Shown here piece by piece: positions 1 to 50,866 of a stretch of DNA of 64,000 nt. Below the pieces are notes generated by a model. That model did not search any database. It was not told where the DNA came from and was given only the letters and a program-made list of their open reading frames with translations. The position numbers and the translations under genes are program-made. Numbering within the stretch: the first letter of the stretch is position 1; each line of letters starts with the position of its first letter. The DNA lies in sequence record PQ898399.1; one strand, 5' to 3'.

Positions 1-1595
1 TTGAGGCCACTACCACCCCAACCATCGTCTTGTTGAATATCCCAAATATTACCACTATCGCTGTAACTAAGGTTAGCTTCCTCTGAAGGTTTCCATGCCT
101 TCATGTTGGCGAGCATAGACACAGTATCGATAGCGTCATCGTGTTTGGACTTGAAGCCAGCAAGAGATGCTTTGGTCAGTTCGTCCATCATCTCAACCAA
201 CGGCACCGAGTGTTTCATTTCTTGAGGGAAGTACATCTTACCCGCCTTGAAGAAAGGAACCACTACGTTGAAACGCTGCATCTTGTTGGTGTTCGGTCGG
301 ATCCCTGGCATGTCAGAGTTATCTTTGGAAGCCAGAGTGAAATAGTTATTACGTGTCATCATCTGTTCCTGAATCCACGGAATAAACCCGCCCTGCTGCC
401 CGGTAACTTCAATACCTACTGACACTGGTTTGTACTTACTGTTAAGCATAAACAGATCGTCCAGGTTTTTACCCATGTCCTGTCGCTTACAAATACCGTC
501 TACCCAGAACCAGTCACCGTTATTGTTATAAGCCCAGACCGAGATAAACGAGAAGTCGGCTGCTTGCTTATCGCTGGTGGCAAAGTCAGTGGTGATGTAG
601 AAGTTGAACATGTGCTTGTTGTTAAGCACAAGCTCACGGCGATACCAGCGAATGTCACTGTCAGCGATCAGACGGTCTTCATCGGACATAATTCGAAGCA
701 TAAGCTCCTGGTTAAATGTCGCAATCTTCCCGGCCTTCAGTGCTTTGTCATACTGGTTTTTAACGTACTTATAATCGAATCGGTCAGGCCAGCTACCCTT
801 AAAGTCTTTCTCGTCACAAGGGAAACGCTCGCATACCGGGTAGACGTTAACAGCCCATGCCCCGGATTCTACCGCTTTGTATAGAGGATCCCCTGCGTTA
901 AACGGCGTACCAGACCAAATCATCATGTTACGTTGAGGGTGGAGGGCATATTCAACCGCCTTATACACCGTATCCTCAATCGCACTGATAACGGTAGGGG
1001 AACGAGCATCCTCATCCGAAACCAGGTCATCGAGTACAGCAAGACGTGGACGTTTACCCATCTCTTTCGTACCACGCACCCCGGTCTTCGCACCGTAACC
1101 TTTAACGACGAATTTGTTACCCTCGACGTTCTGGAACTCCCAACGGATATCGGTGAACTTGGCTACCGGAATATACTTACGCAGGAAGTCAGAGTTCTCG
1201 TAACGGAACTCTAAGTTCTTACGCATGTTCTTCACACCGTTATCCACGGAGTCCGATACATACAAGGCAAGCTCTACAGATCCGAAACCAGGAATCCCAC
1301 CATAGGTTCCAATATACAGGAACAGGTATTCACCCAGTACCGTCGTTTTAGCAGCACCACGGTGCACCATGTTTGCAATCCTGGTTTCCCCGGTACTTAC
1401 CTGGTCGAGCATCTTGTAGTGCAGCACTGGGGTTTTGTTCTCTTCCCCCTGCCCGCCGTTTACCATCTTGATAAACAGCACGAACTCTAACGCAAAGGGC
1501 GAAGGCACATAACCCGGATCGTCACTGTAGTCCACGTCAGACAGCCACGCGTCCACTGTCTTGGGGGTTATCACTTCTGCATTGGTGATATTCAT
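1..1595 (-). CDS. terL: Terminase large subunit (N4 gp68-like); 3' end runs off the window
   Basis: Hand translation from ATG at 1595 (overlaps stop of upstream gene): MNITNAEV...PSPFALEFVLFIKMVNGGQGEENKTPVLHYKMLDQ...HRGAAKTT (Walker A); read at both ends, still in frame at position 3; absent from ORF track because it runs off the edge. Confidence 0.92.
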   Translation of the reverse strand, partial: MNITNAEVITPKTVDAWLSDVDYSDDPGYVPSPFALEFVLFIKMVNGGQGEENKTPVLHYKMLDQVSTGETRIANMVHRGAAKTTVLGEYLFLYIGTYGGIPGFGSVELALYVSDSVDNGVKNMRKNLEFRYENSDFLRKYIPVAKFTDIRWEFQNVEGNKFVVKGYGAKTGVRGTKEMGKRPRLAVLDDLVSDEDARSPTVISAIEDTVYKAVEYALHPQRNMMIWSGTPFNAGDPLYKAVESGAWAVNVYPVCERFPCDEKDFKGSWPDRFDYKYVKNQYDKALKAGKIATFNQELMLRIMSDEDRLIADSDIRWYRRELVLNNKHMFNFYITTDFATSDKQAADFSFISVWAYNNNGDWFWVDGICKRQDMGKNLDDLFMLNSKYKPVSVGIEVTGQQGGFIPWIQEQMMTRNNYFTLASKDNSDMPGIRPNTNKMQRFNVVVPFFKAGKMYFPQEMKHSVPLVEMMDELTKASLAGFKSKHDDAIDTVSMLANMKAWKPSEEANLSYSDSGNIWDIQQDDGWGGSGL

Positions 1596-2272
1596 GCTTT
1601 CTCACCCTCAATAAGGCGTCCACCAGCGATCTGCCCGGCAGTCTGAGCACCAGAGCGGATAGTTTCCTGCTGTGCCTGTACCAGATTACCCACAGCCGCA
1701 CGCAGAGCATCCAGCGTACCATCGTCCTTGTGGTTGATATCCAATTCAACCTTCTTGGTTTCTGGCGGCTTAAGGTGGCTCATCAGACTGTTGGCTGCAT
1801 CACTGCGTACCTTCTCACTGGTAGCAGTCATCATAATCTCAGCCTGTGTCTGCACAGCCTTCCAGAAATAGTCACGCCCCAGGATATGAACAGGAATCAT
1901 AGCCTGTTCCATAATCAAGCCTACCAGCTTGTTATTGTGGTAAGCGTGGACGTAACTGGAGATAGCCTTAGCAGTCGTACCCTTCTGCATGAAGTAGTTA
2001 TAACGCTCAGGGAACGTCTTGATATACGCATCCTGGTTGTTCAGCCCCATCAGCTTATAGCTGACATAGCGTACTGCATCCAGATAGCTTTCCAGCTTGT
2101 ACTTACCCTCACGCATAACATGAGCATACGTCAGCAGGTTCTCACGATACTGCCCATAGAATGCAGGGTCACTGATTGCTTTGTTAATATTCTGAAGGAC
2201 TGTATCTGTCACTGACTTACGTACAGTATCTGGCAGTGCAGCCCTTAACTCATCTATCGTTAACTTTGACAT
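1592..2272 (-). CDS. Conserved N4 gp69-like protein (possible terminase small subunit)
   Basis: YRENLLTY...YLDAVRYVSYKLMG...AYIKTFPERY typical of the gene directly upstream of N4-like terL. Confidence 0.75.
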   Translation of the reverse strand: MSKLTIDELRAALPDTVRKSVTDTVLQNINKAISDPAFYGQYRENLLTYAHVMREGKYKLESYLDAVRYVSYKLMGLNNQDAYIKTFPERYNYFMQKGTTAKAISSYVHAYHNNKLVGLIMEQAMIPVHILGRDYFWKAVQTQAEIMMTATSEKVRSDAANSLMSHLKPPETKKVELDINHKDDGTLDALRAAVGNLVQAQQETIRSGAQTAGQIAGGRLIEGEKA

Positions 2273-2304
2273 AAGGTATAGGCTCCCTATAGGTTTTAAG
2301 CCAG

Positions 2305-2333
2305 AGTGTAAGACAGTCAGAAAGGTTGGGCAA
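2305..2333 (-). promoter_or_regulatory. Candidate sigma70-type late promoter
   Basis: Minus strand TTGCCC-17 nt-TACACT, 32 nt upstream of the gp69-like start; N4 late genes use host sigma70 RNAP. Confidence 0.5.
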
Positions 2334-2360
2334 TTTTTATAATTTTTATGAGGAAATTTT

Positions 2361-2645
2361 ATGTTAGTGGAAGTTATCTATAGTCCACGAAGAGGTTATG
2401 GTATACGGGCAAATGGTTTGTTTTATGACTTCCGACATAAACCTTGGCCTCGTGGAAAACGTACACCAGAGAGTGACCAGACAGCTATACGCTGGTTCAG
2501 GAAAGAATTGTATAACCCTCGTCGTCGTTTACAGCATTATACGGGTAAACCTACCCCAATAGGTTCTGCTGTAGTGTACAGTCGTGAATCAACGTCTGAT
2601 GAAAGAGAAGGTAATTGTAGACACCCGGAAAACCGAGTGAGTTAA
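2361..2645 (+). CDS. Hypothetical protein (terminal region)
   Basis: ORF with GAGG RBS. Confidence 0.55.
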   Translation: MLVEVIYSPRRGYGIRANGLFYDFRHKPWPRGKRTPESDQTAIRWFRKELYNPRRRLQHYTGKPTPIGSAVVYSRESTSDEREGNCRHPENRVS

Positions 2646-2695
2646 AACTTTTTCAACTTTTTATAAATTTTTTAATTTAGGTATGAGGAAACTTT

Positions 2696-2908
2696 ATGTT
2701 AATCAGACCGCGTGTGAACACTATCGACATAGATGGCTTAGGGGATTTAGTTATCTCACGTAGCAAATCACCATTCATTTTAGACTTAGGCCATGAAAGC
2801 GATGTTGAGGTTAAAGTAACTAACTTTAACTTTATCGCTATGTATCAGCGTACTCGTATCGGCAGGTTTATCTATGCGATGAAGTTCGTATGGAAACACT
2901 GTAAGTAG
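2696..2908 (+). CDS. Hypothetical protein (terminal region)
   Basis: ORF with GAGG RBS. Confidence 0.55.
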   Translation: MLIRPRVNTIDIDGLGDLVISRSKSPFILDLGHESDVEVKVTNFNFIAMYQRTRIGRFIYAMKFVWKHCK

Positions 2909-2941
2909 TTAACCTCCTGATTATTTTTATAGGTAAATTCT

Positions 2942-3130
2942 ATGTATCGGATGAGTAAGCGCAGTCTTGTTACCCGTATTGTATTGCTACCAGTTTATGT
3001 AGTGCTCTGGTTCTTAGGTGGTATAGCTTTAACCGCTTACTATCTCACAGAGAAGCTGTGGAACTTCCTGGATAAACTTATGGATAAGTTTGAAGCCTGG
3101 GTACATAAGATAGCACCACTCGGTAAGTAG
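2942..3130 (+). CDS. Hypothetical membrane protein
   Basis: AGGT RBS; one hydrophobic segment IVLLPVYVVLWFLGGIALTAYYL. Confidence 0.55.
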   Translation: MYRMSKRSLVTRIVLLPVYVVLWFLGGIALTAYYLTEKLWNFLDKLMDKFEAWVHKIAPLGK

Positions 3131-3286
3131 TTAGTCTGCTAATTATTTTTATGGAAAACTTTTTCAATTTTTTGCTAGTTAGGTACGGTAGCACTACTTA
3201 CTACTCTGGCTGTTAGAAATCTGGGACTCCCCCCGGTGTCATCGCCTGGAAAAAAGAATTCTTACTCCTTACACAAATAAACTTAA

Positions 3287-3303
3287 GGCCATAGGCCATG
3301 CTG
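3287..3303 (+). promoter_or_regulatory. Candidate vRNAP hairpin promoter (GGCC-ATA-GGCC, predicted +1 G3303)
   Basis: 4-bp stem, 3-nt loop, R(+1)-TG at N4 spacing; upstream of first early gene. Confidence 0.55.
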
Positions 3304-3343
3304 TGAGCAATGGTGCTCATCATACATGTATGGAGTAATACAA

Positions 3344-3616
3344 ATGTCTAACGTATCTAATGTAGCTAAGCCTTCTCTCTTCGCAGCAATCACTGGTGCT
3401 GTTGTCTCTACTGTGTCAGTGGTAACTACTACTGCTGAAGCCATGAACTCACTGGCTAATGCTGGTAACCAACTGGCTAAGGTAGCAGAGAACAAAGCTA
3501 CTCGTTTCGGTGAACTCATCGAGATGAAAGACCAGATGACTTACAACGCAATGAAGCATGAGCTTGACCAGCAGGTTGCTGCTCTCGCTGCATCTCTCGA
3601 TACCAAACGTAAGTAA
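3344..3616 (+). CDS. First early protein, Ala-rich/coiled-coil hypothetical
   Basis: GGAG RBS before ATG 3344; monocistronic between hairpin and terminator. Confidence 0.8.
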   Translation: MSNVSNVAKPSLFAAITGAVVSTVSVVTTTAEAMNSLANAGNQLAKVAENKATRFGELIEMKDQMTYNAMKHELDQQVAALAASLDTKRK

Positions 3617-3621
3617 GCATC

Positions 3622-3654
3622 AGCCTCATCCTTCGGGATGGGGCTTATTCTTTT
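3622..3654 (+). terminator. Intrinsic terminator
   Basis: AGCCTCATCC-TTCG-GGATGGGGCT then T-rich tail. Confidence 0.8.
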
Positions 3655-3655
3655 C

Positions 3656-3678
3656 TACACAATTACACAACTACACAA
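3656..3678 (+). repeat. TACACAA x3 tandem repeat (8-nt period)
   Basis: Copies at 3656, 3664, 3672; a fourth at 3270. Confidence 0.75.
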
Positions 3679-3875
3679 TCAACCTATGACAGTAAGGTGC
3701 GCTAAGCAGGTTCAAAACTTATGGCAATTTACTCGCGCTAGGTATGACGGTCAGAATTCATATACAGATACTCATCTATCGATTTTATTCATAACACTTA
3801 TCGAAAAAATGAGTTAGTCAAAAGGGTTGACAGAGAATAGGATACATATACTCCAGTATGTACTACTTAACTTTG

Positions 3876-3975
3876 TTTACCTCTACCTTATCAACTACTA
3901 TCTCTATACCTATACCTACCCTATATACTATCTATACTACTACCTTACATATACCTATAACCTTATAAACACTAT
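3876..3975 (+). repeat. 100-nt G-free low-complexity tract (CTAT/CTAC/TACC units)
   Basis: No G on + strand between G3875 and G3976. Confidence 0.85.
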
Positions 3976-4011
3976 GTATATAAGTATGGGTATCCTATCT
4001 ATAACCAGTGA

Positions 4012-4044
4012 GTAACACGTAGGTACGTAGTACCGTAGTGTTAC
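4012..4044 (+). other. Nested inverted repeat GTAACAC-GTA-GGTAC-GTA-GTACC-GTA-GTGTTAC
   Basis: 7-bp outer and 5-bp inner stems read directly. Confidence 0.85.
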
Positions 4045-4064
4045 GAACGGTAGATAGTTATATC

Positions 4065-4082
4065 TACGCATAGCGTATGTAA
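4065..4082 (+). promoter_or_regulatory. Candidate vRNAP hairpin promoter (TACGC-ATA-GCGTA, predicted +1 A4082)
   Basis: 5-bp stem, 3-nt loop, followed by TGTAATGAG as at 5650. Confidence 0.7.
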
Positions 4083-4114
4083 TGAGATTCCTATTCATTA
4101 CTGGAGATATAACT

Positions 4115-4432
4115 ATGTCTAACTTATCTGAATGCTCACCTGCTTGTAATTGCATGTATTGCAGACTGTCACAGGATAGCTCTATCGCGTTCTCAGCTCG
4201 TTCTGACCAAACCAACCCAGTTACATCACCTAACCCTGTATCGCCTCAAATTGAGCGATTCAGTGACCTTCCTGACGGTGCTATCTTCTACCTGGCACAA
4301 ACATATGCCTATGGTGGACGTCAGGCATTAATCAAGACACTGGAAGACGGTGGTGAACATAATGCTGTATACGCAGTATACGGTGGTATTGGTATTCACA
4401 TTAACGATGACCGTCTGGTCATTCGTAAATAA
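4115..4432 (+). CDS. Early hypothetical protein (paralog of 5447-5626)
   Basis: GGAG RBS; FSDLPDGAIFYL...IKTLEDGGEHNAV. Confidence 0.75.
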   Translation: MSNLSECSPACNCMYCRLSQDSSIAFSARSDQTNPVTSPNPVSPQIERFSDLPDGAIFYLAQTYAYGGRQALIKTLEDGGEHNAVYAVYGGIGIHINDDRLVIRK

Positions 4433-4445
4433 ACCAGGAGTTAAC

Positions 4446-4706
4446 ATGTTAACCAAATGCAATGTATCTATCTCGACCGATGTAGTGTATGTCTCTGCAT
4501 CCAAGTTCAGTATTGGTAATGGCATCATTGAAGATGTGCCTGCTCAGTGGCTGGTCTACTTCAGTCGTGAAACTGAACGTGAGCATAACTATGGATTGCC
4601 TTACGAACGCTGCTATGAGTTCGTTACTAAACCTACTCGTAAGCAGATTCGTAAAGCTCGCAGACACTTCAAAGTCGGATACGATATGTACGAAAACTAC
4701 AACTAA
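4446..4706 (+). CDS. Early hypothetical protein
   Basis: AGGAG RBS before ATG 4446. Confidence 0.7.
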   Translation: MLTKCNVSISTDVVYVSASKFSIGNGIIEDVPAQWLVYFSRETEREHNYGLPYERCYEFVTKPTRKQIRKARRHFKVGYDMYENYN

Positions 4707-4719
4707 TAACCCGGCCTTT

Positions 4720-4730
4720 GTGCATAGCAC
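4720..4730 (+). promoter_or_regulatory. GTGC-ATA-GCAC hairpin (weak promoter candidate or part of a longer stem 4711-4739)
   Basis: Same loop as other hairpins but predicted +1 is C. Confidence 0.35.
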
Positions 4731-4766
4731 TTAGGCTGGAATAACAATAAACCAAGGTGCATAACT

Positions 4767-4859
4767 ATGCTTATCTCTGACTTACCTCTGATTGTGCTCA
4801 GTGCAATCATCTTCATCGCAGCAATCTCATTCATCGATAACAAATACCCGAGGAAATAA
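4767..4859 (+). CDS. 30-aa single-pass membrane peptide
   Basis: MLISDLPLIVLSAIIFIAAISFIDNKYPRK; AAGGT RBS; below ORF-track cutoff. Confidence 0.6.
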   Translation: MLISDLPLIVLSAIIFIAAISFIDNKYPRK

Positions 4860-4861
4860 TC

Positions 4862-4951
4862 ATGACCATTCGTAAATCAACTATCCGTCGTATCGCTAAA
4901 TGTGCAGTGGCTATGGCTGCTGTTGCTCTCACTCTGTATGTGGGGGCTTGA
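4862..4951 (+). CDS. 29-aa basic/hydrophobic peptide
   Basis: MTIRKSTIRRIAKCAVAMAAVALTLYVGA; GAGG RBS; TGATG coupling to next ORF. Confidence 0.6.
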   Translation: MTIRKSTIRRIAKCAVAMAAVALTLYVGA

Positions 4952-5136
4952 TGCGTAGCGATCACATCCGTAAAGAACTCAAGTTCAAACATGAGGGTGA
5001 GGACTACGTAGTAGTAGTCCAATTCACCAAACGAAAGCTTGAACAGGCTAAAGCCAAAGCTCCTTACAACAACGGTGCTGTACTTAACAGTGCCGTACTT
5101 TATGCCATGACTGCATGGCGGAGACTATTCAAATGA
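4951..5136 (+). CDS. Early hypothetical protein
   Basis: Translationally coupled start MRSDHIRK. Confidence 0.65.
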   Translation: MRSDHIRKELKFKHEGEDYVVVVQFTKRKLEQAKAKAPYNNGAVLNSAVLYAMTAWRRLFK

Positions 5137-5447
5137 ACGTACATGATGCAATCGTTAAAGCCAGACAAGAAGGATGGGAGATGCGTCTCGAAAGGGAGCA
5201 TCTGCGTAAATTCGCTGAACCCCAAATCCGTCAGCGTCTGGTAGAAACTCACCTGGGCTATAGATATTACGTTAAACGTATCGAAGTCCAGATTGGTGAA
5301 GACCTGTATTACCACATGGCTACCGAGTGCAAAGTGGATGACACCACTAAGCTTCCAATACTCGAAGAGGTTGCAGGTAAAGTGTTTAGACGCTACCACA
5401 GTGGTGGTCAGATTAACCTGGTACACTGGAAAAAAGTGGAGTTCTAA
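5133..5447 (+). CDS. Early hypothetical protein
   Basis: GGAG RBS, start overlaps previous stop. Confidence 0.7.
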   Translation: MNVHDAIVKARQEGWEMRLEREHLRKFAEPQIRQRLVETHLGYRYYVKRIEVQIGEDLYYHMATECKVDDTTKLPILEEVAGKVFRRYHSGGQINLVHWKKVEF

Positions 5448-5626
5448 TGAAATTCAAAGATATCCCTGAACAAGCTCATTTCAGCTTAACTGAAGATGAG
5501 CGTATTGGACTGGATATAACTTACATCAAAGCCTACCAGGATGGTGGCAGATATAACGCAGTTAAACTGGGTAAGTTAACCGTACCAGTTCTACTCCAGC
5601 CTGAATTCGAAGTTACTCTAAAATAA
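5447..5626 (+). CDS. 59-aa early protein (paralog of 4115-4432)
   Basis: MKFKDIPEQAHFSL...IKAYQDGGRYNAV; TAATG coupling. Confidence 0.7.
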   Translation: MKFKDIPEQAHFSLTEDERIGLDITYIKAYQDGGRYNAVKLGKLTVPVLLQPEFEVTLK

Positions 5627-5649
5627 GCCCTTCGGGGCTTATCTTTTTT
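5623..5649 (+). terminator. Intrinsic terminator
   Basis: TAAGCCC-TTCG-GGGCTTA then T-tract. Confidence 0.8.
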
Positions 5650-5669
5650 AATGCACTCCGTGCATTGTA
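5650..5669 (+). promoter_or_regulatory. vRNAP hairpin promoter with canonical loop (AATGCAC-TCC-GTGCATT; template C-GGA-G)
   Basis: 7-bp stem; template loop equals N4 P2-type GGA triloop; directly after terminator. Confidence 0.75.
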
Positions 5670-5695
5670 ATGAGTTCCTCAACTGGACTAAGCCT

Positions 5696-5887
5696 ATGGC
5701 TAACGAAATTGATGTAACAGCTAAGATAAACTTAGGTGAAGAACATAGTGTATTTGTCACTATACCTGCATCTGAACTTAAACGTCTTAAGACTTCCAAA
5801 CTTATTGGTAAAGACAGCACAGAGATAACTGTTATAGCTACTCTTGTTCCTGCTGTCTTCGATACAGAATTAGACCAATTATTTTGA
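5696..5887 (+). CDS. Small early protein with KT-LLG motif
   Basis: IPASELKRLKTSKLIG. Confidence 0.7.
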   Translation: MANEIDVTAKINLGEEHSVFVTIPASELKRLKTSKLIGKDSTEITVIATLVPAVFDTELDQLF

Positions 5888-5893
5888 GGCTAT

Positions 5894-6181
5894 ATGAAAG
5901 AAATAACCTACTGGGTAATTAGGCATATACCCACTAAACGTATCCTTGCTACTGCTGACAGCGTAGGCAAGGGCAGAGGTAATACTCGTGTTGATATTCA
6001 AGACACAGGTTTACCTCGACTGTTCGAAACAGAGAGACGAGCCAAGTATTGTCTCGCTCGCTGGCTTGAAGGTAAATTCCATATGACCTGGGATGATGGA
6101 ATTGAAGTTAGCACTCCAGCCATTCCTCGTATAAAGGAGGATATGGAAATCATACCTGTTCAACTTAAGGTGATGGTATGA
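5894..6181 (+). CDS. Early hypothetical protein (PRLF type)
   Basis: GAGG RBS; PRLFETERRAK. Confidence 0.7.
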   Translation: MKEITYWVIRHIPTKRILATADSVGKGRGNTRVDIQDTGLPRLFETERRAKYCLARWLEGKFHMTWDDGIEVSTPAIPRIKEDMEIIPVQLKVMV

Positions 6182-6480
6182 CAACTGTTAACTTATGCTA
6201 TCAGGCTGGTAAATACACTTTTATTGCTACGCTCGATGAGCAAGATATAGAAGGGTTAAAAACCAGAAGATTAATGGGTATGCACAAGCGTCAGGGAAGA
6301 TTACGTATGTTAATCATGGAGACTGACCGCATAGCGTTATACCCGAATGATCTTCATCGTATGTATACCATCCCAGAAACTGGTATGCGTATTCATCTCA
6401 ATGTACCTATTGCACCTGATGTAATGCACTGGGTATGTCCTACAACTGATGAGCTTAATGCTCTTATCTACTTCGAGTAA
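6178..6480 (+). CDS. Small early protein with KT-LLG motif
   Basis: LDEQDIEGLKTRRLMG. Confidence 0.7.
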   Translation: MTTVNLCYQAGKYTFIATLDEQDIEGLKTRRLMGMHKRQGRLRMLIMETDRIALYPNDLHRMYTIPETGMRIHLNVPIAPDVMHWVCPTTDELNALIYFE

Positions 6481-6486
6481 ATAACT

Positions 6487-6660
6487 ATGGTTGATATCGA
6501 ATATAAACTCATTAGGAATGAGAATAAGCAATCGCGTTATCCTTGGGTAGTTATCAAAAGTTATCCCGGATTCTTCCAGTATTTCTACTGTTCTGACAAA
6601 CAGAAGAAAGATTTCCCTAACCTGGCTGACCTATACAAAGAGGCTCGTAAAAATGGCTAA
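6487..6660 (+). CDS. 57-aa hypothetical protein
   Basis: MVDIEYKLIRNE...; fills gap between neighbours. Confidence 0.55.
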   Translation: MVDIEYKLIRNENKQSRYPWVVIKSYPGFFQYFYCSDKQKKDFPNLADLYKEARKNG

Positions 6661-6937
6661 ACGTAGACTACGTGCATACAATGCTACAGCGTTATATGTT
6701 CATATAACACCAGAGCTACTAAAGAGTCTGAAGGTTAAGCTCATGGTACTAAAGGTTCCATGTGTGGAACTGAAATTACCTACATTCAGAAACCAGCAGA
6801 AGAAATCAACCAAGCAAATCAAGGTTGGTGATGGTCTGTGGATCGAAGCTCAGCTTATGTATCCTGACCTCTGTAAAGCTGGTTCCTATCTGGAAGCCTA
6901 CTGGCGTTTCAATCTGACCCGGAGGATACCCTTCTAA
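6653..6937 (+). CDS. Small early protein with degenerate KT-LLG motif
   Basis: ITPELLKSLKVKLMVL; GAGG RBS. Confidence 0.7.
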   Translation: MAKRRLRAYNATALYVHITPELLKSLKVKLMVLKVPCVELKLPTFRNQQKKSTKQIKVGDGLWIEAQLMYPDLCKAGSYLEAYWRFNLTRRIPF

Positions 6938-7020
6938 AACTAAGGTTTGGGGTAAATCTTATACTGAAGTGTTTATGGATGAATTCTATAAATTAAACAA
7001 AGTAATCAAGGTAAACCGTA

Positions 7021-7341
7021 ATGATAATAATCCGTGATGTAATTCGCTATCACCCATCAGGTACTAAGTTAATAGCTGAAGCTAAAGTAACTGAAGAAGA
7101 GTTCAATAAGATCAGAACTCTATTCCTGATTGGTAATAAAGAACCAGTGCAACTGGTTACCTCTGTGTATTGGTATGAGGGTGGTTATCCACCTAAGCCA
7201 GTATATCTGGTGTGTCCTCAAGATTGGCGTGGTCAATTGCTCAATCCTGATACTGCTGCTTATGAAGCAAATACCAAAGAGAAACGTATGTGGCTCTTTG
7301 AATATAAACCAGTAAAGGATAGTGGGGGTGCTGCTATATGA
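7021..7341 (+). CDS. Small early protein with KT-LLG motif
   Basis: VTEEEFNKIRTLFLIG. Confidence 0.7.
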   Translation: MIIIRDVIRYHPSGTKLIAEAKVTEEEFNKIRTLFLIGNKEPVQLVTSVYWYEGGYPPKPVYLVCPQDWRGQLLNPDTAAYEANTKEKRMWLFEYKPVKDSGGAAI

Positions 7342-7628
7342 GAGTTGGTAATGGTTCACAAGCAACACCGCGTAGATACTTTTGTAAGCTCAGTGAAACT
7401 GAACTTAAGAAACTAGCTACCAAAGCGTTACTTAAATCCAGAACTTCAACTAATGAGTTCTATATGTCGTTCACCGTAAAAGTACCAACCTGGTACTCAA
7501 GAGGTAGAACGGAAAATAATGTATTCGAAATAAATGGTAAACGTGCAGTTGCTATTTATCTGGATACTAACGATTACTCAACTAAACCAGGAGTGTTAGC
7601 AGAATGGATAATCAGGATATATCACTGA
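7338..7628 (+). CDS. Small early protein with degenerate KT-LLG motif
   Basis: LSETELKKLATKALLK. Confidence 0.65.
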   Translation: MRVGNGSQATPRRYFCKLSETELKKLATKALLKSRTSTNEFYMSFTVKVPTWYSRGRTENNVFEINGKRAVAIYLDTNDYSTKPGVLAEWIIRIYH

Positions 7629-7951
7629 CTGATGGTGGTACAGAAATACTTCGTTGGGATGCTGAAAGAAACACATTTGATAAAATTGGTTATCTTACCC
7701 CGGGAGTGATGGAAAATCTTAAAACTCGTGTGATGCTTACACCGAATTTCACATGGACAGGTGATATCATTATTGATATCCGCATGTTCGAATTGGGGCC
7801 GGGTAGACTCGTCGGAGAGATTATGCTCCGTGTAGGTATACCTGGTATCAAGTGTAAAACTATCATGCTCAGTGTCCGTTTAACCAAGCAAATGCTTCAG
7901 GGTAAGTATCCCTATGTTAAAACGGAGGCAACAATCAAAGGTATTAGCTAA
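7604..7951 (+). CDS. Small early protein with degenerate KT-LLG motif
   Basis: LTPGVMENLKTRVMLT; AGGAG RBS. Confidence 0.7.
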   Translation: MDNQDISLTDGGTEILRWDAERNTFDKIGYLTPGVMENLKTRVMLTPNFTWTGDIIIDIRMFELGPGRLVGEIMLRVGIPGIKCKTIMLSVRLTKQMLQGKYPYVKTEATIKGIS

Positions 7952-8214
7952 TGGCTATAATCGAACGTAAGCGTAAAGATACAGCTTACTCCATCGAGTT
8001 CGATGATTCTGTTATCACTAATGATAACGGTACTGTATTCGGAGATATAACTATATATCGTTGGAATCGTAAGGATTTCTCTGATGGCTATATAAGAGGT
8101 ACACATCAGTTTAGATTTAGTATCCCACCCGGAGAACTAAATAAAATAAAAACTAAACTGCTATTAGGTATACATCCTACCTTTCGTATCGTTCTAAATT
8201 ACCAAGTTTGGTAA
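7951..8214 (+). CDS. Small early protein with KT-LLG motif
   Basis: IPPGELNKIKTKLLLG. Confidence 0.7.
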   Translation: MAIIERKRKDTAYSIEFDDSVITNDNGTVFGDITIYRWNRKDFSDGYIRGTHQFRFSIPPGELNKIKTKLLLGIHPTFRIVLNYQVW

Positions 8215-8233
8215 ACGTGCATAGCACGTTCAA
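8214..8233 (+). promoter_or_regulatory. Candidate vRNAP hairpin promoter (AACGTGC-ATA-GCACGTT, predicted +1 A8233)
   Basis: 7-bp stem, 3-nt loop, R(+1)-TG. Confidence 0.7.
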
Positions 8234-8295
8234 TGACTAATAATACTCTGGTTTCAGGGCTGCTGAAGCCAGGGTTCAACTCTAAGGATTGTTGT

Positions 8296-8577
8296 ATGCC
8301 AACTATGAATATCGATCATGCTCAGACTAATCTGCGCTGGTGTAAGCGTGCGTGGATGGATGGAGAAATGCGTGATCTGGCATTGTTCCTGTTCCATAAA
8401 GGTATGTCTCAGTTAATTATGTCCGACCTGGCTTTAGAGACTCAGGTTGAAGTCGCTGCCTCTATTCTGGGGCGTGAAGCATTTGAAGACCTCTCTGCGT
8501 TCAGTGAAGAGGTCAACGGCAGTCCTCTGCAATATGCTGCATGGCGTGACCGTGTTAGCTGCTTAATCATCTGTTAG
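8296..8577 (+). CDS. Early hypothetical protein between two hairpin promoters
   Basis: AAGGA RBS before ATG 8296. Confidence 0.7.
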   Translation: MPTMNIDHAQTNLRWCKRAWMDGEMRDLALFLFHKGMSQLIMSDLALETQVEVAASILGREAFEDLSAFSEEVNGSPLQYAAWRDRVSCLIIC

Positions 8578-8578
8578 A

Positions 8579-8598
8579 AACGCGCATAGCGCGTTATG
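8579..8598 (+). promoter_or_regulatory. Candidate vRNAP hairpin promoter (AACGCGC-ATA-GCGCGTT, predicted +1 G8598)
   Basis: 7-bp stem, 3-nt loop, R(+1)-TG; upstream of gp2-like gene. Confidence 0.7.
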
Positions 8599-8667
8599 TG
8601 CAATTAAGGGCATGTTAAGCCCACATTCTGTTATTAATCATCTACTCATCTTTAAGAGGTATATATC

Positions 8668-8952
8668 ATGGCTTTCACTCGCACTCCTGCTGCAAACAAC
8701 GCTCCTGCTGACAATGCTGCTAAGAACAAAGTTGGCGGCTATCTGAACATCAACATTCTGACCCGTGACGGTTCCCGTAAACGTCTGGGCGGCTCTGGTA
8801 TTGCTCTGCGTGAAAACCACCCGGTTGAAGGCGCGATTCTGGCTCTGATTCGTTCAAATCCAGAGAAGCTGCAAGACCTGGTTGGCCGTATTGAGCTGAC
8901 CTTTGGCGAAGCTCACAAAGAAGGCGAATTCGTCGATCTGGGCATCGAATAA
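8668..8952 (+). CDS. N4 gp2-like ssDNA-binding activator of RNAPII
   Basis: GYLNINILTRDGSRKRLG...IALRE pattern recalled from gp2 homologs; strong GAGG RBS; position upstream of RNAPII genes. Confidence 0.65.
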   Translation: MAFTRTPAANNAPADNAAKNKVGGYLNINILTRDGSRKRLGGSGIALRENHPVEGAILALIRSNPEKLQDLVGRIELTFGEAHKEGEFVDLGIE

Positions 8953-8959
8953 ACCAATT

Positions 8960-8985
8960 AAGCCAACCTTCGGGTTGGCTTTTTT
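8960..8985 (+). terminator. Intrinsic terminator
   Basis: AAGCCAACC-TTCG-GGTTGGCTT-TTTT. Confidence 0.85.
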
Positions 8986-8997
8986 ATTGAGGTATGT

Positions 8998-9162
8998 ATG
9001 GAAAAGATCTCTGTAACACCGACCAAATGGGCAGTAGTCGTAGGCTACGTTGAATACCACGCCGGTCGTCAATTTCCGTGGATGGGGCGTCATGGTTGTT
9101 CATTCAGCTTCTTCGCTACCGAGGATGAAGCCACTCAGTTCGCTATCACAGGTGTCCTGTAA
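8998..9162 (+). CDS. 54-aa hypothetical protein
   Basis: GAGGT RBS; TAATG coupling to next gene. Confidence 0.6.
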   Translation: MEKISVTPTKWAVVVGYVEYHAGRQFPWMGRHGCSFSFFATEDEATQFAITGVL

Positions 9163-9527
9163 TGGCTAAAGACTGGGGTGATCGCTGGGGCGATGAAGCA
9201 TTAGAGCGTGGCTCTAAAAGATTCCAACGTAAGGTATTAAGCGTATGGGATGAGAACGGTAATTTCATCCCGAAGGAGAAAAGAAATCCTATGTATATCA
9301 GTGATGGTACTCGTGCAATAAAGATCACTCAGGAGCTTTTAGACAAGCTCAAAACCCGTGTGCTAATTGGCAACATGGGTAAGTTCAAAGTCTCAAACCA
9401 GAGCATGTATTACACGGCTCAGTTACCAAAAGATCACTATGTGGATTCTATCAATATCAGCGGTAAGGTATTGAAAGCTAAAGCAGTTATGCCATTCCGT
9501 GGCGTATGGGAATTCCGTGTAGTTTAA
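9162..9527 (+). CDS. Small protein with KT-LLG motif
   Basis: ITQELLDKLKTRVLIG. Confidence 0.7.
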   Translation: MAKDWGDRWGDEALERGSKRFQRKVLSVWDENGNFIPKEKRNPMYISDGTRAIKITQELLDKLKTRVLIGNMGKFKVSNQSMYYTAQLPKDHYVDSINISGKVLKAKAVMPFRGVWEFRVV

Positions 9528-9545
9528 ACCAGTAAGGAGAATGTA

Positions 9546-10526
9546 ATGCACCGTTGGCTCGCTAAGGAAGAATTGCAACTTATCAATGAACGTCAGTTCA
9601 ACCGTAAGCATATTGATGGCTATATCCGTGCAGAACTCTTCGAAGGCCAGGAGAACCTCTGGCCTGAAGTAGCACAGGGCGTAGAGCTATTGAATCAATG
9701 GATGGATCAGCAGTTCTATGACAGCAAAGCTGTCCGTATCAGTCACTTAAGACAACTGGACTTAGAGAAGCTGGTTGTCGAGATATTCGTAGGCGTGTGC
9801 TACGTACAGGAGGAAACACCACTGGTCAACGTCATTGGTCAACTGGCTTCACGTATCGGCTTTGACGATAAGCGTGACAGCATTCAGACCATTGCCGAAG
9901 TGCTGGCTGTGCTGTGTGAAACTGATGTTTATGACATCAGCAAACCACACCCTAAAGCCAGTCTGTATATCAAATCTAACATCACCTTTGATGAGAGATT
10001 AAGCAATTTCATTGCATACTCATGCTATTTACCACCACTGGTTTGTGAACCTCGTGAACTGGTAAATAACCGTTCAACCGCCTATTACACGCATGAATCA
10101 GATAGCCTGATTCTGGGTGGAGGATTTAACCATCATGACGGAAACATCTGCCTTGATGTACTTAATTCACGCAATCGTGTTCCTCTCTCCCTGGACGTGC
10201 AATTCCTTTGCACAGTGGAGGAAGAACCAACTCACGATCTCGATGTTATTGACTCTGACGAGGATCTCAGTGACTGGCAGATAGCCGATATGGTACGCAA
10301 ACAGAAGCAAAACTGGGCGCGTTACAAAGAGCAGTCGTATTACTTCTATAGCCTGATGGTAAACCAGGGTAACAGGTTCTACATCAGCAACAAGGTAGAC
10401 AAACGTGGGCGCATGTACGCCTGTGGCTACCACATCACCCCACAGGGAACCAGCTTCAAGAAAGCGATGATTAACTTTGCCGATCAAGAGCAAGTAACAG
10501 GTGTCCCTGCGCAATTCAGAAAATGA
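9546..10526 (+). CDS. RNA polymerase II subunit 1 (N4 gp15-like, RNAP1)
   Basis: T7-family motif VDKRGRMY; YLPPLVCEP; adjacent to RNAP2. Confidence 0.92.
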   Translation: MHRWLAKEELQLINERQFNRKHIDGYIRAELFEGQENLWPEVAQGVELLNQWMDQQFYDSKAVRISHLRQLDLEKLVVEIFVGVCYVQEETPLVNVIGQLASRIGFDDKRDSIQTIAEVLAVLCETDVYDISKPHPKASLYIKSNITFDERLSNFIAYSCYLPPLVCEPRELVNNRSTAYYTHESDSLILGGGFNHHDGNICLDVLNSRNRVPLSLDVQFLCTVEEEPTHDLDVIDSDEDLSDWQIADMVRKQKQNWARYKEQSYYFYSLMVNQGNRFYISNKVDKRGRMYACGYHITPQGTSFKKAMINFADQEQVTGVPAQFRK

Positions 10527-10538
10527 GAGGAATAACTT

Positions 10539-11813
10539 ATGCAACATACTATCAATTTCGGTACTGGCTTCCAGAGATTCTCCGGCTGGGAATATCTCTG
10601 CATTGACGTAGCCAACCATTATGGGCTGGATAAAGAACTGTTCAACACCCGCATTCAGTGGGTGTATGACCACATCGATAACCTGGAAACATTGGCAGAT
10701 GATGCCGATGAACCAGTGCTGTTCAAGAAAGCTGTTATGACCCTTCGCCGTGCTCAGCACGGTGAGGCTGTAGGCCACGTAGTTCACTTCGATGCCTGCT
10801 GCTCCGGTATCCAGATTATGTCTGCACTTACTGGCTGTGAAGCTGGTGCGTACAACACTGGTATGGTTGACCCAAATCAGCGTATGGATGCCTACAGCAA
10901 CACCACTGGCGAGATGAACAAGATCCTGCAAACCAAAGGGTTAGCAAGTATCACGGTTCCTCGTGGTGACGTTAAACAAGCCGTAATGACTTCAGGCTAT
11001 GGCTCTAAAGCTGTGCCTAAGAAGGTATTCGGTGAAGGTGAAATGCTGGACGTGTTCTACGATGCAGCTATGACCATCGCTCCGGGCGCATTCAAGCTCA
11101 TGGATGAGCTTCTGGAATCATGGCGTCCATTTGCCCTGGAACACCGTCTGGTGGCTCCTGATGGCTTCACAGCCGTCATCAAGGTAATGGAAACCAAGGA
11201 AACCAGAATTGAAGTGGACGAACTCGACCATGCAACGTTTACGCTGCAATATCGTGTGAACGAGGGTACAGAGCGTGGACGTGCTAACGTAGCAAATACC
11301 ATCCACTTCTGTGATGCGTATCTCCTGCGTGGTATTGAGCGTCGTTGCAACTACGATCCAGTGGTTGTACGTAATGCTCAGGAAGTCCTGCGTATGGCTG
11401 CTCTGGGCTATTCCTGCGGTAATACTCAGATGGCCTGCACTGATGAACTCAGTGAACTGCTGCCACTGTGCATTCGCTCTCACATCGCTGATGTGGCGCT
11501 CCTGCCGTTGCTGCGTTGGGATAACGTGATGTGTCTGCCTAAGTGGATGGTGCATAAGCTGCTGTCTATCGTTAACGATATGCTGTCTTACAAGCCATTC
11601 CCTATCCTGACTGTCCATGATGCCTTTGGTGCTCATGCCAATAACTGTGACCTCACTCGTTACTGGTACAAAGAAATCATGGCTGATATGGCTGATTCTA
11701 ACCTGCTGGAAATGCTGATGTGTCAGCTTTACCAAATCACTGATGGTAAGTACGAGAAGCTGTCACCTAATCTGGGCGACAAAATTCGTAACTCCAATTA
11801 CGCATTAAGTTGA
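10539..11813 (+). CDS. RNA polymerase II subunit 2 (N4 gp16-like, RNAP2)
   Basis: Motif A HFDACCSGIQI, motif B RGDVKQAVMTSGYG, motif C VHDAF. Confidence 0.95.
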   Translation: MQHTINFGTGFQRFSGWEYLCIDVANHYGLDKELFNTRIQWVYDHIDNLETLADDADEPVLFKKAVMTLRRAQHGEAVGHVVHFDACCSGIQIMSALTGCEAGAYNTGMVDPNQRMDAYSNTTGEMNKILQTKGLASITVPRGDVKQAVMTSGYGSKAVPKKVFGEGEMLDVFYDAAMTIAPGAFKLMDELLESWRPFALEHRLVAPDGFTAVIKVMETKETRIEVDELDHATFTLQYRVNEGTERGRANVANTIHFCDAYLLRGIERRCNYDPVVVRNAQEVLRMAALGYSCGNTQMACTDELSELLPLCIRSHIADVALLPLLRWDNVMCLPKWMVHKLLSIVNDMLSYKPFPILTVHDAFGAHANNCDLTRYWYKEIMADMADSNLLEMLMCQLYQITDGKYEKLSPNLGDKIRNSNYALS

Positions 11814-11820
11814 GGAAATT

Positions 11821-11985
11821 ATGGTATTAACTGATCAAATGGAAGCGGTTATGAATCGCTTTGAAGCTGCTGTTCGTGCGCATGAGATGGTAGGAGCGCA
11901 AGATCCTGAAGATCGCCCAGGGATTGAAGACGAGTACCAGGAAGCCAAAGCAGAACTTGCTGAATGCTTATCCTGGGTTCCATAA
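11821..11985 (+). CDS. 54-aa acidic hypothetical protein
   Basis: GAGG RBS; MVLTDQMEAV... Confidence 0.65.
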   Translation: MVLTDQMEAVMNRFEAAVRAHEMVGAQDPEDRPGIEDEYQEAKAELAECLSWVP

Positions 11986-11990
11986 CCACC

Positions 11991-12014
11991 AGCCACCCTT
12001 CGGGGTGGCTTTTT
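11991..12014 (+). terminator. Intrinsic terminator
   Basis: AGCCACCC-TTCG-GGGTGGCT-TTTT. Confidence 0.85.
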
Positions 12015-12028
12015 CATTTGGAGATCCT

Positions 12029-12283
12029 ATGAAACTATTGCACTCGCTGCCTTACACAAAGGACGGAGTAGTCCATCCGGTAGGCAGAATGACTGTACCT
12101 AAATCACTGGTTTCAACTATGAAAGCCAGTCTGTTATCAGGTATGCCGGAGGTTGAACTTAGGCTTACGCCTGACGTGATTAAAACTGAAGGTATGCCTG
12201 TTCACCTACCTACGCTGGGCGTAGTCGGTGTAGCTGTCTACGCTGATGGTGATGACCGGGTAGTGAAACTCTACCGGGAGTAG
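12029..12283 (+). CDS. Small protein with degenerate KT-LLG motif
   Basis: VPKSLVSTMKASLLSG; GGAG RBS. Confidence 0.7.
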   Translation: MKLLHSLPYTKDGVVHPVGRMTVPKSLVSTMKASLLSGMPEVELRLTPDVIKTEGMPVHLPTLGVVGVAVYADGDDRVVKLYRE

Positions 12284-12285
12284 GT

Positions 12286-12534
12286 ATGAAAGCTAATTTA
12301 AGGTATGGGGGGCATCAAGCCACTACACATATTCAATATATTTACACAACACCTGAAATTATAAACCAGTTTAAAACCAAGAAGTTACTGGGATTAAAGT
12401 CAATCCTAATAAAGGCTACGCCTACTGAAGAAGCAACTTCAATGTTGGATCTCAAAGCCGAGGGTATTATAGAAATAGCTCATTTTTATGATGCTATCAC
12501 TAACTCAATGATGCTTCGCTTAAAACTTAAGTGA
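12286..12534 (+). CDS. Small protein with KT-LLG motif
   Basis: TTPEIINQFKTKKLLG. Confidence 0.7.
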   Translation: MKANLRYGGHQATTHIQYIYTTPEIINQFKTKKLLGLKSILIKATPTEEATSMLDLKAEGIIEIAHFYDAITNSMMLRLKLK

Positions 12535-12552
12535 CGCACTCCGTGCGTTGAG
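12534..12552 (+). promoter_or_regulatory. vRNAP hairpin promoter with canonical loop (ACGCAC-TCC-GTGCGT, predicted +1 G12552)
   Basis: 6-bp stem, template loop GGA, R(+1)-TGAG. Confidence 0.7.
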
Positions 12553-12634
12553 TGAGTTGACGCTTGCGCGTCTGTATAACTTAATTTTCTCTTTTCTGAA
12601 GGGCTATCCTACTCATTGGGATAGCCTATTTTTT
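12552..12634 (+). ncRNA. Candidate ~83-nt small RNA or primer transcript
   Basis: Hairpin promoter followed by terminator with no ORF between; 5' stem GACGC-TTGC-GCGTC and U/C-rich linker. Confidence 0.35.
12602..12634 (+). terminator. Intrinsic terminator
   Basis: GGCTATCC-9 nt-GGATAGCC-TATTTTTT. Confidence 0.75.
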
Positions 12635-12778
12635 ATACTTCAGAGACTTCTAAGACAGTCATGTACATAGTTCTAGAACTTCTATAGAAGTTTTATACCT
12701 ATATGCTAGACAGTCAAAAATCGACACTTTTGGCTATACCCACCCTAAACCCTAAATCCACTTATCTATAGGCTAAAA

Positions 12779-13015
12779 ATGAACGCAATAACCTTCATTG
12801 CTATGGTCGGTGCTGTCTGGTTCGGACTCGGCTGGACACTCGGATCTGGTGCGATTAAACACACCAAATTATTGCTCAAACAGGCTACTCACCCCATAGA
12901 ACTCATTGGGCTAAACTTACGAATTAAGCAGATTACACAGGCCAGGAAGGTTCTTCTTGTCCGGTGCATCATCTGTTTAATCGTTGCTGTATTGGCTCAT
13001 CTGATCGTGAGGTAG
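12779..13015 (+). CDS. Hypothetical membrane protein
   Basis: Two hydrophobic segments. Confidence 0.7.
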   Translation: MNAITFIAMVGAVWFGLGWTLGSGAIKHTKLLLKQATHPIELIGLNLRIKQITQARKVLLVRCIICLIVAVLAHLIVR

Positions 13016-13017
13016 CA

Positions 13018-13245
13018 ATGGACTACAAAATCTTTACTTACGTATTAGCTGTGCTGGCTTTCCTCTGCTTCCTGAATGCAGCGGATTACTGGGAAGACTA
13101 TCGCCGTTACTACTGGCAATTCACTTCCCAGGCTCAAGCCAGATATGGAAGACACATCCGTCGTAACGCGGTGCTCTGTGTGCTGTGGGGTGTCTTCTGG
13201 GCAGCTATTGCAATCATTTGCTGGTTTATCCCACAAGGAGCTTAA
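13018..13245 (+). CDS. Hypothetical membrane protein
   Basis: GAGGT RBS; two hydrophobic segments. Confidence 0.7.
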   Translation: MDYKIFTYVLAVLAFLCFLNAADYWEDYRRYYWQFTSQAQARYGRHIRRNAVLCVLWGVFWAAIAIICWFIPQGA

Positions 13246-13246
13246 G

Positions 13247-13861
13247 ATGCACCATTTTGATAAAGCAACCGAAGACGCAGTATTAAATGCGTTGAAACGC
13301 TATTCAGAATACCAGGTAGCCCGTATGTATGGCTTACGGGTGGCCTCGGTACGCCTGATTCGTCAAACAGCGTTAGAACGTCAGTGCAACCGTACTGCTA
13401 CCCTCCGGCAGCAGGAAAGCCCATTACAAATGGGTTTACGTCTGCATGAAGACCTCTATGGTAGATCTTCGCGTACAGCAGAAGTACCAACCACTTACGA
13501 TCAATGGCGTGATATTGCCTTTGGTAAACAGGATTCAGTTACTGTGCCAAAGCAAGATTACGCTGGTTTAGAAGGTCGTGTGATGGCTGGCTTCTTCACC
13601 CCTAACGGCTTGCCTACGCCAGCCTTCTGGGGCTTTATAAGCCAGTATGTGAAGAAGTCCGGGCATACCATGCTGGACATTCTGCACGACAAAGAAATCT
13701 ATTCCCCAGAGCAACTCGAACGCGCTCTGGATATCGACTCTCAAATTCAAGACATGACGAAAGCTCAGCGTATTGCTCTGCTACGTCGTCTGACTAATGC
13801 GGTATATTCAGATGAATTCAAAGATCCAACCGATTCCGGCTCCGATGTTCAGGACAGCTAA
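13247..13861 (+). CDS. Hypothetical protein with possible N-terminal HTH
   Basis: AGGAG RBS; SEYQVARMYGLRVASVRLIR. Confidence 0.65.
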   Translation: MHHFDKATEDAVLNALKRYSEYQVARMYGLRVASVRLIRQTALERQCNRTATLRQQESPLQMGLRLHEDLYGRSSRTAEVPTTYDQWRDIAFGKQDSVTVPKQDYAGLEGRVMAGFFTPNGLPTPAFWGFISQYVKKSGHTMLDILHDKEIYSPEQLERALDIDSQIQDMTKAQRIALLRRLTNAVYSDEFKDPTDSGSDVQDS

Positions 13862-50852: not shown

Positions 50853-50866
50853 GGGGCTTCTTTATT
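50831..50866. terminator. Bidirectional terminator
   Basis: AAAT-AAGAAGCCCCC-TGAGTA-GGGGGCTTCTT-TATT. Confidence 0.8.

Follow-up and report, generated by a model that had tools for sequence, protein, structure and literature searches.

A candidate hairpin-promoted early unit carrying one diverged small-protein family in an N4-like Enterobacter phage

We analyzed a 64,000-nt stretch of sequence record PQ898399.1 (hereafter, the window) and focused on the block of small genes at positions 5650–8214. In this N4-like Enterobacter phage related to Cbunavirus, the block is probably transcribed as a separate early unit; it would be opened by its own conserved DNA-hairpin promoter with a C-TCC-G loop, whereas C-ATA-G hairpins would open the neighboring units. 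Most of the unit encodes a clade-restricted family of small globular proteins; in the one member modeled, a single helix carrying the shared motif is packed on a five-stranded sheet. The phage has ten diverged paralogues, seven in the block, one just upstream of the phage RNA polymerase (RNAPII) genes and two just downstream. The genes are real, under purifying selection and fast-evolving, and they are gained, lost and swapped between related phages while keeping an AT-rich, rare-codon composition in every relative. The proteins may interact with host factors through variable surfaces on a common scaffold, and their own promoter and poor codon usage may set the time or level of their production. 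Taken as a whole, we consider this account of an early unit with its own promoter, one diverged family and a host-interaction role to be somewhat more likely than not.

The window sequence is identical to that of Enterobacter phage vB_Ecl_SABI (PQ864023, 76,175 bp) and also forms the final 64 kb of the record 'Enterobacter phage SonariX'. Because it encodes a split T7-like RNAPII and a 3,623-aa virion RNA polymerase (vRNAP), the phage is an N4-like podovirus. Its closest named relatives are Cbunavirus phages of Pectobacterium, Kosakonia and Escherichia, with 60–80% identity in the RNAPII large subunit. The physical left end was placed near 3155–3199 by homology with the ends of phages CB4 and Possum; therefore, the block lies ~2.5–5 kb from the inferred left end.

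Block layout and the protein family

Nine plus-strand open reading frames (ORFs) fill the block, starting at 5696, 5894, 6178, 6487, 6653, 7021, 7338, 7604 and 7951 and spaced by 6, -4, 6, -8, 83, -4, -25 and -1 nt; the same nine coding sequences are annotated in the identical record PQ864023. An initial annotation, made from the letters alone, had described nine tightly packed ORFs, seven with a common motif, that follow a terminator and a canonical-loop hairpin and end at a second hairpin. This description was confirmed. The terminator (5623–5649) is followed by the hairpin at 5650–5666 with its TCC loop, a pattern scan and a profile hidden Markov model agree on the motif in seven of the nine ORFs (all except 5894–6181 and 6487–6660), and the final stop codon ends at 8214, which is the first base of the hairpin at 8214–8230. 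Both bounding hairpins are present; however, they belong to different classes, with TCC and ATA loops. The pair 12029/12286 had also been described as bounded by a terminator and another TCC hairpin, and it does lie between the terminator stem at 11991–12010 and the hairpin at 12534–12548, but it has no upstream hairpin of its own. To the earlier tally of seven genes plus this pair, we add a tenth member at 9162–9527. The features are as follows.

5623–5649 (+): intrinsic terminator with an 8-bp stem (5623–5642), a TTCG loop and a T-run to 5649; closes the upstream early unit
5650–5666 (+): candidate hairpin promoter of class C-TCC-G with a perfect 7-bp stem, followed by ATGAGTT
5696–5887 (+): family member, 63 aa; variable insertion, found only here and in an IMG/VR contig (L011)
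5894–6181 (+): non-family ORF, 95 aa, phrog_23096 (unknown function); strongly conserved, with a ratio of nonsynonymous to synonymous substitution rates (dN/dS) of 0.03–0.10
6178–6480 (+): family member, 100 aa, phrog_30060; near-universal orthogroup OG04
6487–6660 (+): non-family ORF, 57 aa, no match to the family
6653–6937 (+): family member, 94 aa; motif variant LKVKLMVL
7021–7341 (+): family member, 106 aa, phrog_24685; near-universal orthogroup OG02
7338–7628 (+): family member, 96 aa, phrog_35909; allele replaced in close relatives (54% identity)
7604–7951 (+): family member, 115 aa, phrog_27457; long insertion following the motif
7951–8214 (+): family member, 87 aa; motif close to the C-terminus
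8214–8230 (+): ATA-class hairpin (C-ATA-G, 7-bp stem); end of the block, and the putative opening of the next unit
8579–8595 (+): second ATA-class hairpin, upstream of 8668–8952 (phrog_6271 'toxin') and the RNAPII genes
9162–9527 (+): family member, 121 aa, phrog_35035; immediately precedes the RNAPII small subunit and is absent in three close relatives
9546–10526 and 10539–11813: split T7-like RNAPII
11991–12017 (+): terminator (stem 11991–12010) after the RNAPII unit
12029–12283 (+): family member, 84 aa; orthogroup OG01, in 12 of 12 Cbunavirus-like genomes sampled
12286–12534 (+): family member, 82 aa; orthogroup OG03, protein modeled (beta-alpha-beta4, see below)
12534–12548 (+): second TCC-class hairpin, 6-bp stem
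50865–61736 (minus strand): vRNAP, 3,623 aa

The ten members in the window (the seven block ORFs, 9162–9527, 12029–12283 and 12286–12534) belong to a family with the shared core T/P-x2-E-L-x2-L-[KR]-T-x2-L-L-G. A profile was built on these ten copies and iterated over all ORFs of at least 40 aa on both strands of the window and 13 related loci (2,230 ORFs). It converged on 106 ORFs in the 14 loci, all on the coding strand and either in the early region or adjoining RNAPII; no other ORF among the 2,230, including those on the minus strand, was matched. As two of the 14 loci are the same phage (phiA41), this corresponds to 97 members in 13 distinct genomes. The clustering of the motif is far beyond chance. 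Motif-like matches at 19192 and 20575 were rejected as family members by the profile. Across the family, the motif columns are conserved at 93% for [KR], 82% for T, 89% for L and 72% for G, and the copies use different synonymous codons, indicating that the motif is conserved at the protein level. The proteins are small (60–140 aa) and have isoelectric points (pI) of 4.4–10.8, with a median of 7.0.

Paralogues within the window are almost invisible to one another in BLASTP (best E-value 8e-5). This explains why there is a separate PHROG for each member, every one of 'unknown function', and no Pfam model; Pfam scans of all block proteins returned nothing at E-values up to 1, and a profile of the family core matched nothing in the PDB sequences. 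When 5.8 billion proteins were searched with a word index, 17 proteins were retrieved. In addition, 1.84 billion representatives were searched exhaustively with the profile, which gave nine matches, two of them repetitive false positives, leaving about 7 true clusters. The family was absent from N4 (best profile E-value 0.47 in the first 13 kb), from a Salmonella Ithacavirus and from a distant IMG/VR relative; weak members, two or three per genome, occur in two Klebsiella Efbeekayvirus phages. Variable early ORFs and an early region of lower GC (guanine plus cytosine) content have been noted in published accounts of Cbunavirus genomes, which do not mention the family. Judged from these searches, the family is narrow and restricted to one phage clade.

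We modeled the 12286–12534 protein with AlphaFold2 using a 78-sequence family alignment. The model (mean predicted local distance difference test score (pLDDT) 83.8, predicted template modeling score 0.72, residues 20–82 above 90) consists of one strand, one helix (residues 23–34) and four further strands, with the helix packed on the five-stranded sheet. The motif forms the sole helix and its glycine cap, and the conserved leucines have the spacing of core residues. The motif is read as the fold-defining helix of a predicted small alpha/beta domain, rather than as a free docking peptide. The contrary idea, that a short docking or tag peptide for one partner was grafted onto unrelated small proteins without a common fold, would suit the varying position of the motif within the proteins and the near absence of BLASTP similarity between paralogues beyond its ~16 residues. 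However, the single core helix of the model is the motif itself, the profile aligns strands on either side of it across orthogroups (78 match columns), and the matching models in the BFVD are the family's own orthologues and no others (template modeling score about 0.8). We consider a grafted peptide improbable.

Foldseek and VIA-align comparisons of the model with the PDB gave no clear match, with none above Z 4.6 or below E 0.13. The top weak neighbors (Z 4.6 or lower) were the N-domain of ribosomal protein S8, TusA/SirA and R3H-type sandwiches, and a look-up in the ESM Atlas yielded only low-score leads. Two known folds were considered and rejected. The AbrB/MazE/SpoVT swapped-hairpin domain was suggested by the 'h-x-I-P-x2-E-L...L-G' appearance of the core; there was no match to PF04014 or any other Pfam model (E-values up to 1) and no PDB profile match. 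This domain forms an intertwined beta-beta-alpha-beta-beta dimer, whereas our model is a monomeric beta-alpha-beta4 sandwich, and its structural neighbors include no AbrB-like chain. A ubiquitin-like beta-grasp was suggested by the spacing from the helix to the glycine, and no ubiquitin-like chain was found among the Foldseek or VIA-align neighbors.

Two hairpin classes and the promoter of the block

Over the 14 loci, the hairpin loops fall mainly into the classes C-ATA-G (48 hairpins) and C-TCC-G (45), and no other loop occurs more than 14 times. The hairpin at 5650–5666 is intergenic, follows the terminator immediately and lies 30 nt before the first ATG, in the stem and loop layout of N4-type promoters. 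Its loop is TCC on the coding strand and GGA on the template strand with a C:G closing pair, identical to those of P2 and P3 in the N4 genome, and it conforms to the published recognition rule of N4 vRNAP, a template G-R-A loop (PMC4496689). We read three vRNAP promoters in the N4 genome, at 90, 557 and 4546; on the coding strand each has a TTC or TCC loop with a C:G closing pair. The N4 rule also places a G at -8 in the stem and a template C at +1, at fixed spacing. In the window phage, the template base at -8 is A, a purine other than G, and the predicted coding +1 is A, with a G two or three bases to either side.

In relatives, the hairpin at the start of the block has three different stems and is always followed by ATGAGTT. 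The 31 TCC hairpins compared across 13 genomes show pairing in 95.6% of cells and no variation in the loop or the closing pair; six of the seven stem pairs have changes in both partners, and the observed covariation score was reached by 0 of 500 shuffles. The stem thus covaries while the loop stays constant, indicating that the 5650 element is functional and positionally conserved and bounds the block as a unit. The block is the only left-end unit whose predicted opening promoter class differs from that of its neighbors. Since its opener is of the TCC class and the flanking units are of the ATA class, there is a sequence-level basis for separate regulation. The initial annotation had proposed a separately regulated block with its own promoter; the conserved, covarying hairpin of a distinct class speaks for this proposal, and the regulation itself is plausible. 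Additional 7-bp hairpins inside family ORFs (7142, 7481 and 9201) are not kept in relatives, and we treat them as incidental.

In the window, ATA-class hairpins were found at 3289–3299, 4065–4077, 8214–8230 and 8579–8595. The Cbunavirus-like loci sampled have 2–5 each, with diverse stems and a constant loop. They occupy sites equivalent to those in N4, namely ~90 nt from the inferred left end (a position that matches N4 P1), before the leftmost genes and in tandem before the RNAPII unit.

These positions, together with the annotation of the ATA hairpins as early promoters in CB4, lend weight to a different assignment, in which vRNAP would use the ATA hairpins as its genuine early promoters, RNAPII would read the TCC hairpin at 5650 as a middle-type promoter, and the block would be delayed within the early region. 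TCC hairpins first appear after the terminator and continue rightward past RNAPII, at 12534 and 14041 and up to ~16 kb in relatives. In LUZ7, moreover, early and middle promoters are both hairpins, the middle ones being GC-rich with stems of at least 6 bp (PMC9163698). However, N4 vRNAP reads exactly the C:G-closed TCC/TTC loop, N4 RNAPII promoters are AT-rich and hairpin-free, and three to four TCC hairpins per genome are too few for a whole middle region. A phmmer comparison of the window vRNAP with N4 gp50 aligned only a short polymerase motif and the C-terminal ~1,280 residues (E 5e-45); no alignment was obtained for the central polymerase domain, which is too diverged, and the loop-reading residues could not be aligned to those of N4, such that specificity cannot be inferred from them. 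We give the middle-promoter assignment a substantial chance that falls somewhat short of even.

Further hairpins of the TCC class were observed downstream of the block. Approximately 55 nt beyond the hairpin at 12534 is a terminator-like hairpin (12601–12627) with a T-run and no ORF between them, and the arrangement of the 12534 hairpin and the downstream 'GAGTTGACGC' is conserved in relatives; the 12534–12627 unit may be a short non-coding transcript. In CB4, Possum and phiA41, a C-TCC-G hairpin (CGTGCC/GGCACG) lies inside the RNAPII large-subunit gene (L002, 9843–9857; L004, 10286–10300; L005, 12663–12677), and it is not there in the window. Across window positions 1–15000, matches to sigma-70-like promoters are strongly depleted (8 found vs 30 +/- 5 expected from shuffles), which fits a region transcribed by phage polymerases.

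Variation, composition and genomic setting

The 106 ORFs of the family form 19 orthogroups with patchy presence, and copy number is 10 here, 4–10 in Cbunavirus-like relatives and 2 in an Efbeekayvirus. In relatives whose RNAPII DNA is ~96% identical, the block is 88–93% identical, with segments absent or replaced. The ORF at 5696–5887 is missing from most relatives; contigs of three independent metagenome studies skip 5677–5893 and join 5676 to 5894 via 19 other letters. The 7338–7628 gene matches that of one relative at 100% identity and those of two others at 54%, and 9162–9527 and 12286–12534 are absent from close relatives or present as divergent alleles. All family members have dN/dS values of 0.06–0.6, indicating that the genes encode expressed proteins under constraint. 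Compared with RNAPII, family dN is typically several-fold greater and dS is higher too; raised dS between relatives is expected if recombination exchanges alleles. The genes are thus small, vary in presence among close relatives and evolve faster than core genes, as in accessory islands.

Meanwhile, four orthogroups, OG01 (12029), OG02 (7021), OG03 (12286) and OG04 (6178), are near-universal in Cbunavirus-like genomes, indicating that part of the family set is core and not accessory. In 6 of 12 Cbunavirus-like genomes, a family member immediately precedes the RNAPII genes, and in nearly all of the 12 two members follow right after these genes. The downstream cluster has two members here, four in L014 (7255–8280) and three in L015 (12277–13069), both metagenomic; both family clusters therefore vary in size. 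The earlier view of the block as accessory genes is largely supported by the range of 2–10 copies, the 19 orthogroups, the insertion and the replaced alleles, with the four near-universal orthogroups as the part that did not hold. Across related phages, content and copy number both differ, and the block is not invariant. In CB4 and Possum, the unit homologous to the block is longer and includes a macro-domain gene, and a macro-domain gene likewise precedes the family run in Kc283.

The block has a GC content of 39.3%, compared with 46.9% for the window, and is the minimum among equal-sized windows (lowest 0.16%). Per 1000 codons, ATA occurs 34 times in the block vs 2.2, and AGA 21 times vs 1.6. 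Codon usage by gene group was as follows.

Family genes: ATA, 40% of Ile codons; AGA+AGG, 38% of Arg codons
Long ORFs elsewhere in the genome: ATA, 4% of Ile codons; AGA+AGG, 4% of Arg codons
RNAPII unit: ATA, 4% of Ile codons; AGA+AGG, 10% of Arg codons
Other left-end early genes: ATA, 18% of Ile codons; AGA+AGG, 24% of Arg codons

The by-eye impression that these genes are AT-rich and rich in ATA and AGA codons was therefore correct, as sliding GC and codon counts lie far from the genome average. The phage encodes four tRNAs (Gln, Tyr, Asp and Asn), none of which reads ATA or AGA/AGG. A GC minimum with extreme codon usage, combined with block dS above RNAPII dS between close relatives, which suggests recombination, could point to recent horizontal acquisition of the block from an AT-rich donor. 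However, the family genes of every relative examined have the same bias (ATA/Ile 0.20–0.41 vs 0.02–0.09), indicating that it is a long-standing property of the family and not a recent import. Furthermore, the family was not found outside this phage clade in the protein searches described above, and the entire left early region is AT-rich, as likewise reported for Possum. We regard a recent import as very improbable.

Other observations concern the surroundings of the block and the record itself. The gene at 8668–8952 is perhaps the 'gp2' of the initial annotation; its product has no PDB relative, and its sole match is phrog_6271 'toxin', which does not bear out a gp2/Drc analogue. A ~400-bp non-coding spacer (3646–4062) extends from a terminator at 3622 to the ATA hairpin at 4065 and contains a G-poor stretch (3861–3990, 6 G in 130 nt) with reiterated CTATAC-like words. 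Left of the inferred genome end, at 2320–2945, small ORFs at 2361, 2696 and 2942 are each preceded by a similar AT-rich 'ATTTTTATA...' element. PQ898399 (248,734 bp, 'Enterobacter phage SonariX, partial genome') appears to consist of two joined phages. Its positions 169500–176500 (L020) carry T4-like genes (rpbA, sliding clamp and clamp loader gp44) until ~171,944, ~2.7 kb without annotated genes separates this T4-like part from the N4-like genome, and the latter is the same sequence as vB_Ecl_SABI, which has a separate record of 76,175 bp.

Possible roles of the family and comparison with known systems

Our best guess for the function of the family is host takeover or counter-defence. The early position, the small size and the single predicted scaffold with varying charge (pI 4.4–10.8) fit such a role, as do the fast evolution, the gain and loss of genes and the company of a macro-domain gene in relatives. 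One elaboration would be a diversifiable scaffold repertoire, in which the invariant [KR]-T face of the helix docks every member onto one partner, e.g., RNAPII or extruded hairpin DNA, as the conserved members beside the RNAPII genes might suggest, and the variable sheet and tails capture different host factors. We think this unlikely; if true, the block would amount to a library of adaptors encoded by the phage, with a promoter class and timing of its own.

Alternatively, the proteins could be cofactors of the phage transcription machinery, acting as single-stranded DNA- or hairpin-binding helpers for RNAPII or vRNAP. The conserved members that flank RNAPII, one upstream in half of the Cbunavirus-like genomes and two downstream in nearly all, keep this alternative alive. 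N4-like phages use small single-stranded DNA-binding cofactors, gp2 in N4 and Drc in LUZ7 (PMC4496689, PMC9163698), the top weak structural neighbors are nucleic-acid-binding alpha/beta domains (S8 N-domain, R3H and IF3-C-like), and the conserved [KR]-T could touch nucleic acid. However, those structural matches all lie below Z 5 or at Foldseek E-values of at least 0.13, the level of common arrangements, and the family is not uniformly basic. In addition, most orthogroups are dispensable between close relatives, including the one upstream of RNAPII, and ten cofactors would lack precedent. On balance, we consider a cofactor role for the family unlikely.

Several results weigh against our preferred account of a separately promoted, host-directed early unit. 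The four near-universal orthogroups and the three RNAPII-flanking members in conserved synteny fit a core role equally well. BLASTP reveals no recent tandem duplication among the window paralogues; the earlier term 'expandable' holds for the gain, loss and exchange of cassettes and not for such duplication. No known domain or fusion partner was found in any family member. A confident model exists for one member only, and an earlier AlphaFold2 run on 7338–7628 with a 27-sequence alignment failed (pLDDT 45.5). The choice of polymerase appears ambiguous, as the TCC loop is of the N4 vRNAP type and the ATA hairpins are at the positions of N4 P1–P3. Finally, a search of sequencing runs found related DNA in metagenomic contigs only and no infection RNA-seq; a metagenome scan with an RNAPII query returned two loci only.

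The SPO1 gp37-60 module is a dense set of small early ORFs with dedicated early promoters, mostly clade-specific and thought to target host functions. Unlike the unrelated proteins of modules of that type, the proteins here are dominated by one fold family, which also flanks the phage RNA polymerase genes. The P1–P3 promoters and early region of N4 (gp1–gp14) resemble the block in having an intergenic hairpin with a 5–7 bp stem and a C:G-closed, 3-nt TCC/TTC loop before co-oriented small early genes. In contrast to the clade of the window phage, N4 has no member of the family, and the clade adds a more numerous ATA-loop class at N4-equivalent positions. LUZ7, an N4-like Pseudomonas phage studied by ONT-cappable-seq (PMC9163698), likewise has two kinds of hairpin promoter in one genome and tandem promoters before a small transcription cofactor gene, comparable to the hairpins at 8214 and 8579; its classes were assigned experimentally, whereas ours come from sequence, and loop sequences and gene content differ. 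The anti-signaling/anti-defence hotspot of N4-like phages, in which Cbunavirus CB1 supplies a proven anti-Thoeris gene (bioRxiv 10.64898/2026.06.04.730250), is also a compact island of small genes that vary between relatives. However, it lies between the vRNAP and primase genes and holds unrelated families (sponges, Bes1/2), whereas the block lies in the early region upstream of RNAPII and is dominated by one paralogous family. With the block ~2.5–5 kb from the left end and vRNAP at 50865–61736, the location differs from that of the hotspot, and we rejected the block as an instance of it.

The early regions of N4-like phages encode mostly hypothetical proteins. The present analysis unites about ten such early proteins of each genome in a single family, for which it supplies a defined motif, a confident fold model and a map that separates core from variable members. 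In addition, Cbunavirus-like phages have two well-supported hairpin classes, and the block is the sole left-end unit with the N4-canonical loop; the promoter specificity of vRNAP vs RNAPII in this clade thus becomes directly testable. This phage group is used against Enterobacter, Pectobacterium and Klebsiella, and the family map provides a short, ordered list of candidates for deletion, toxicity and pull-down screens.

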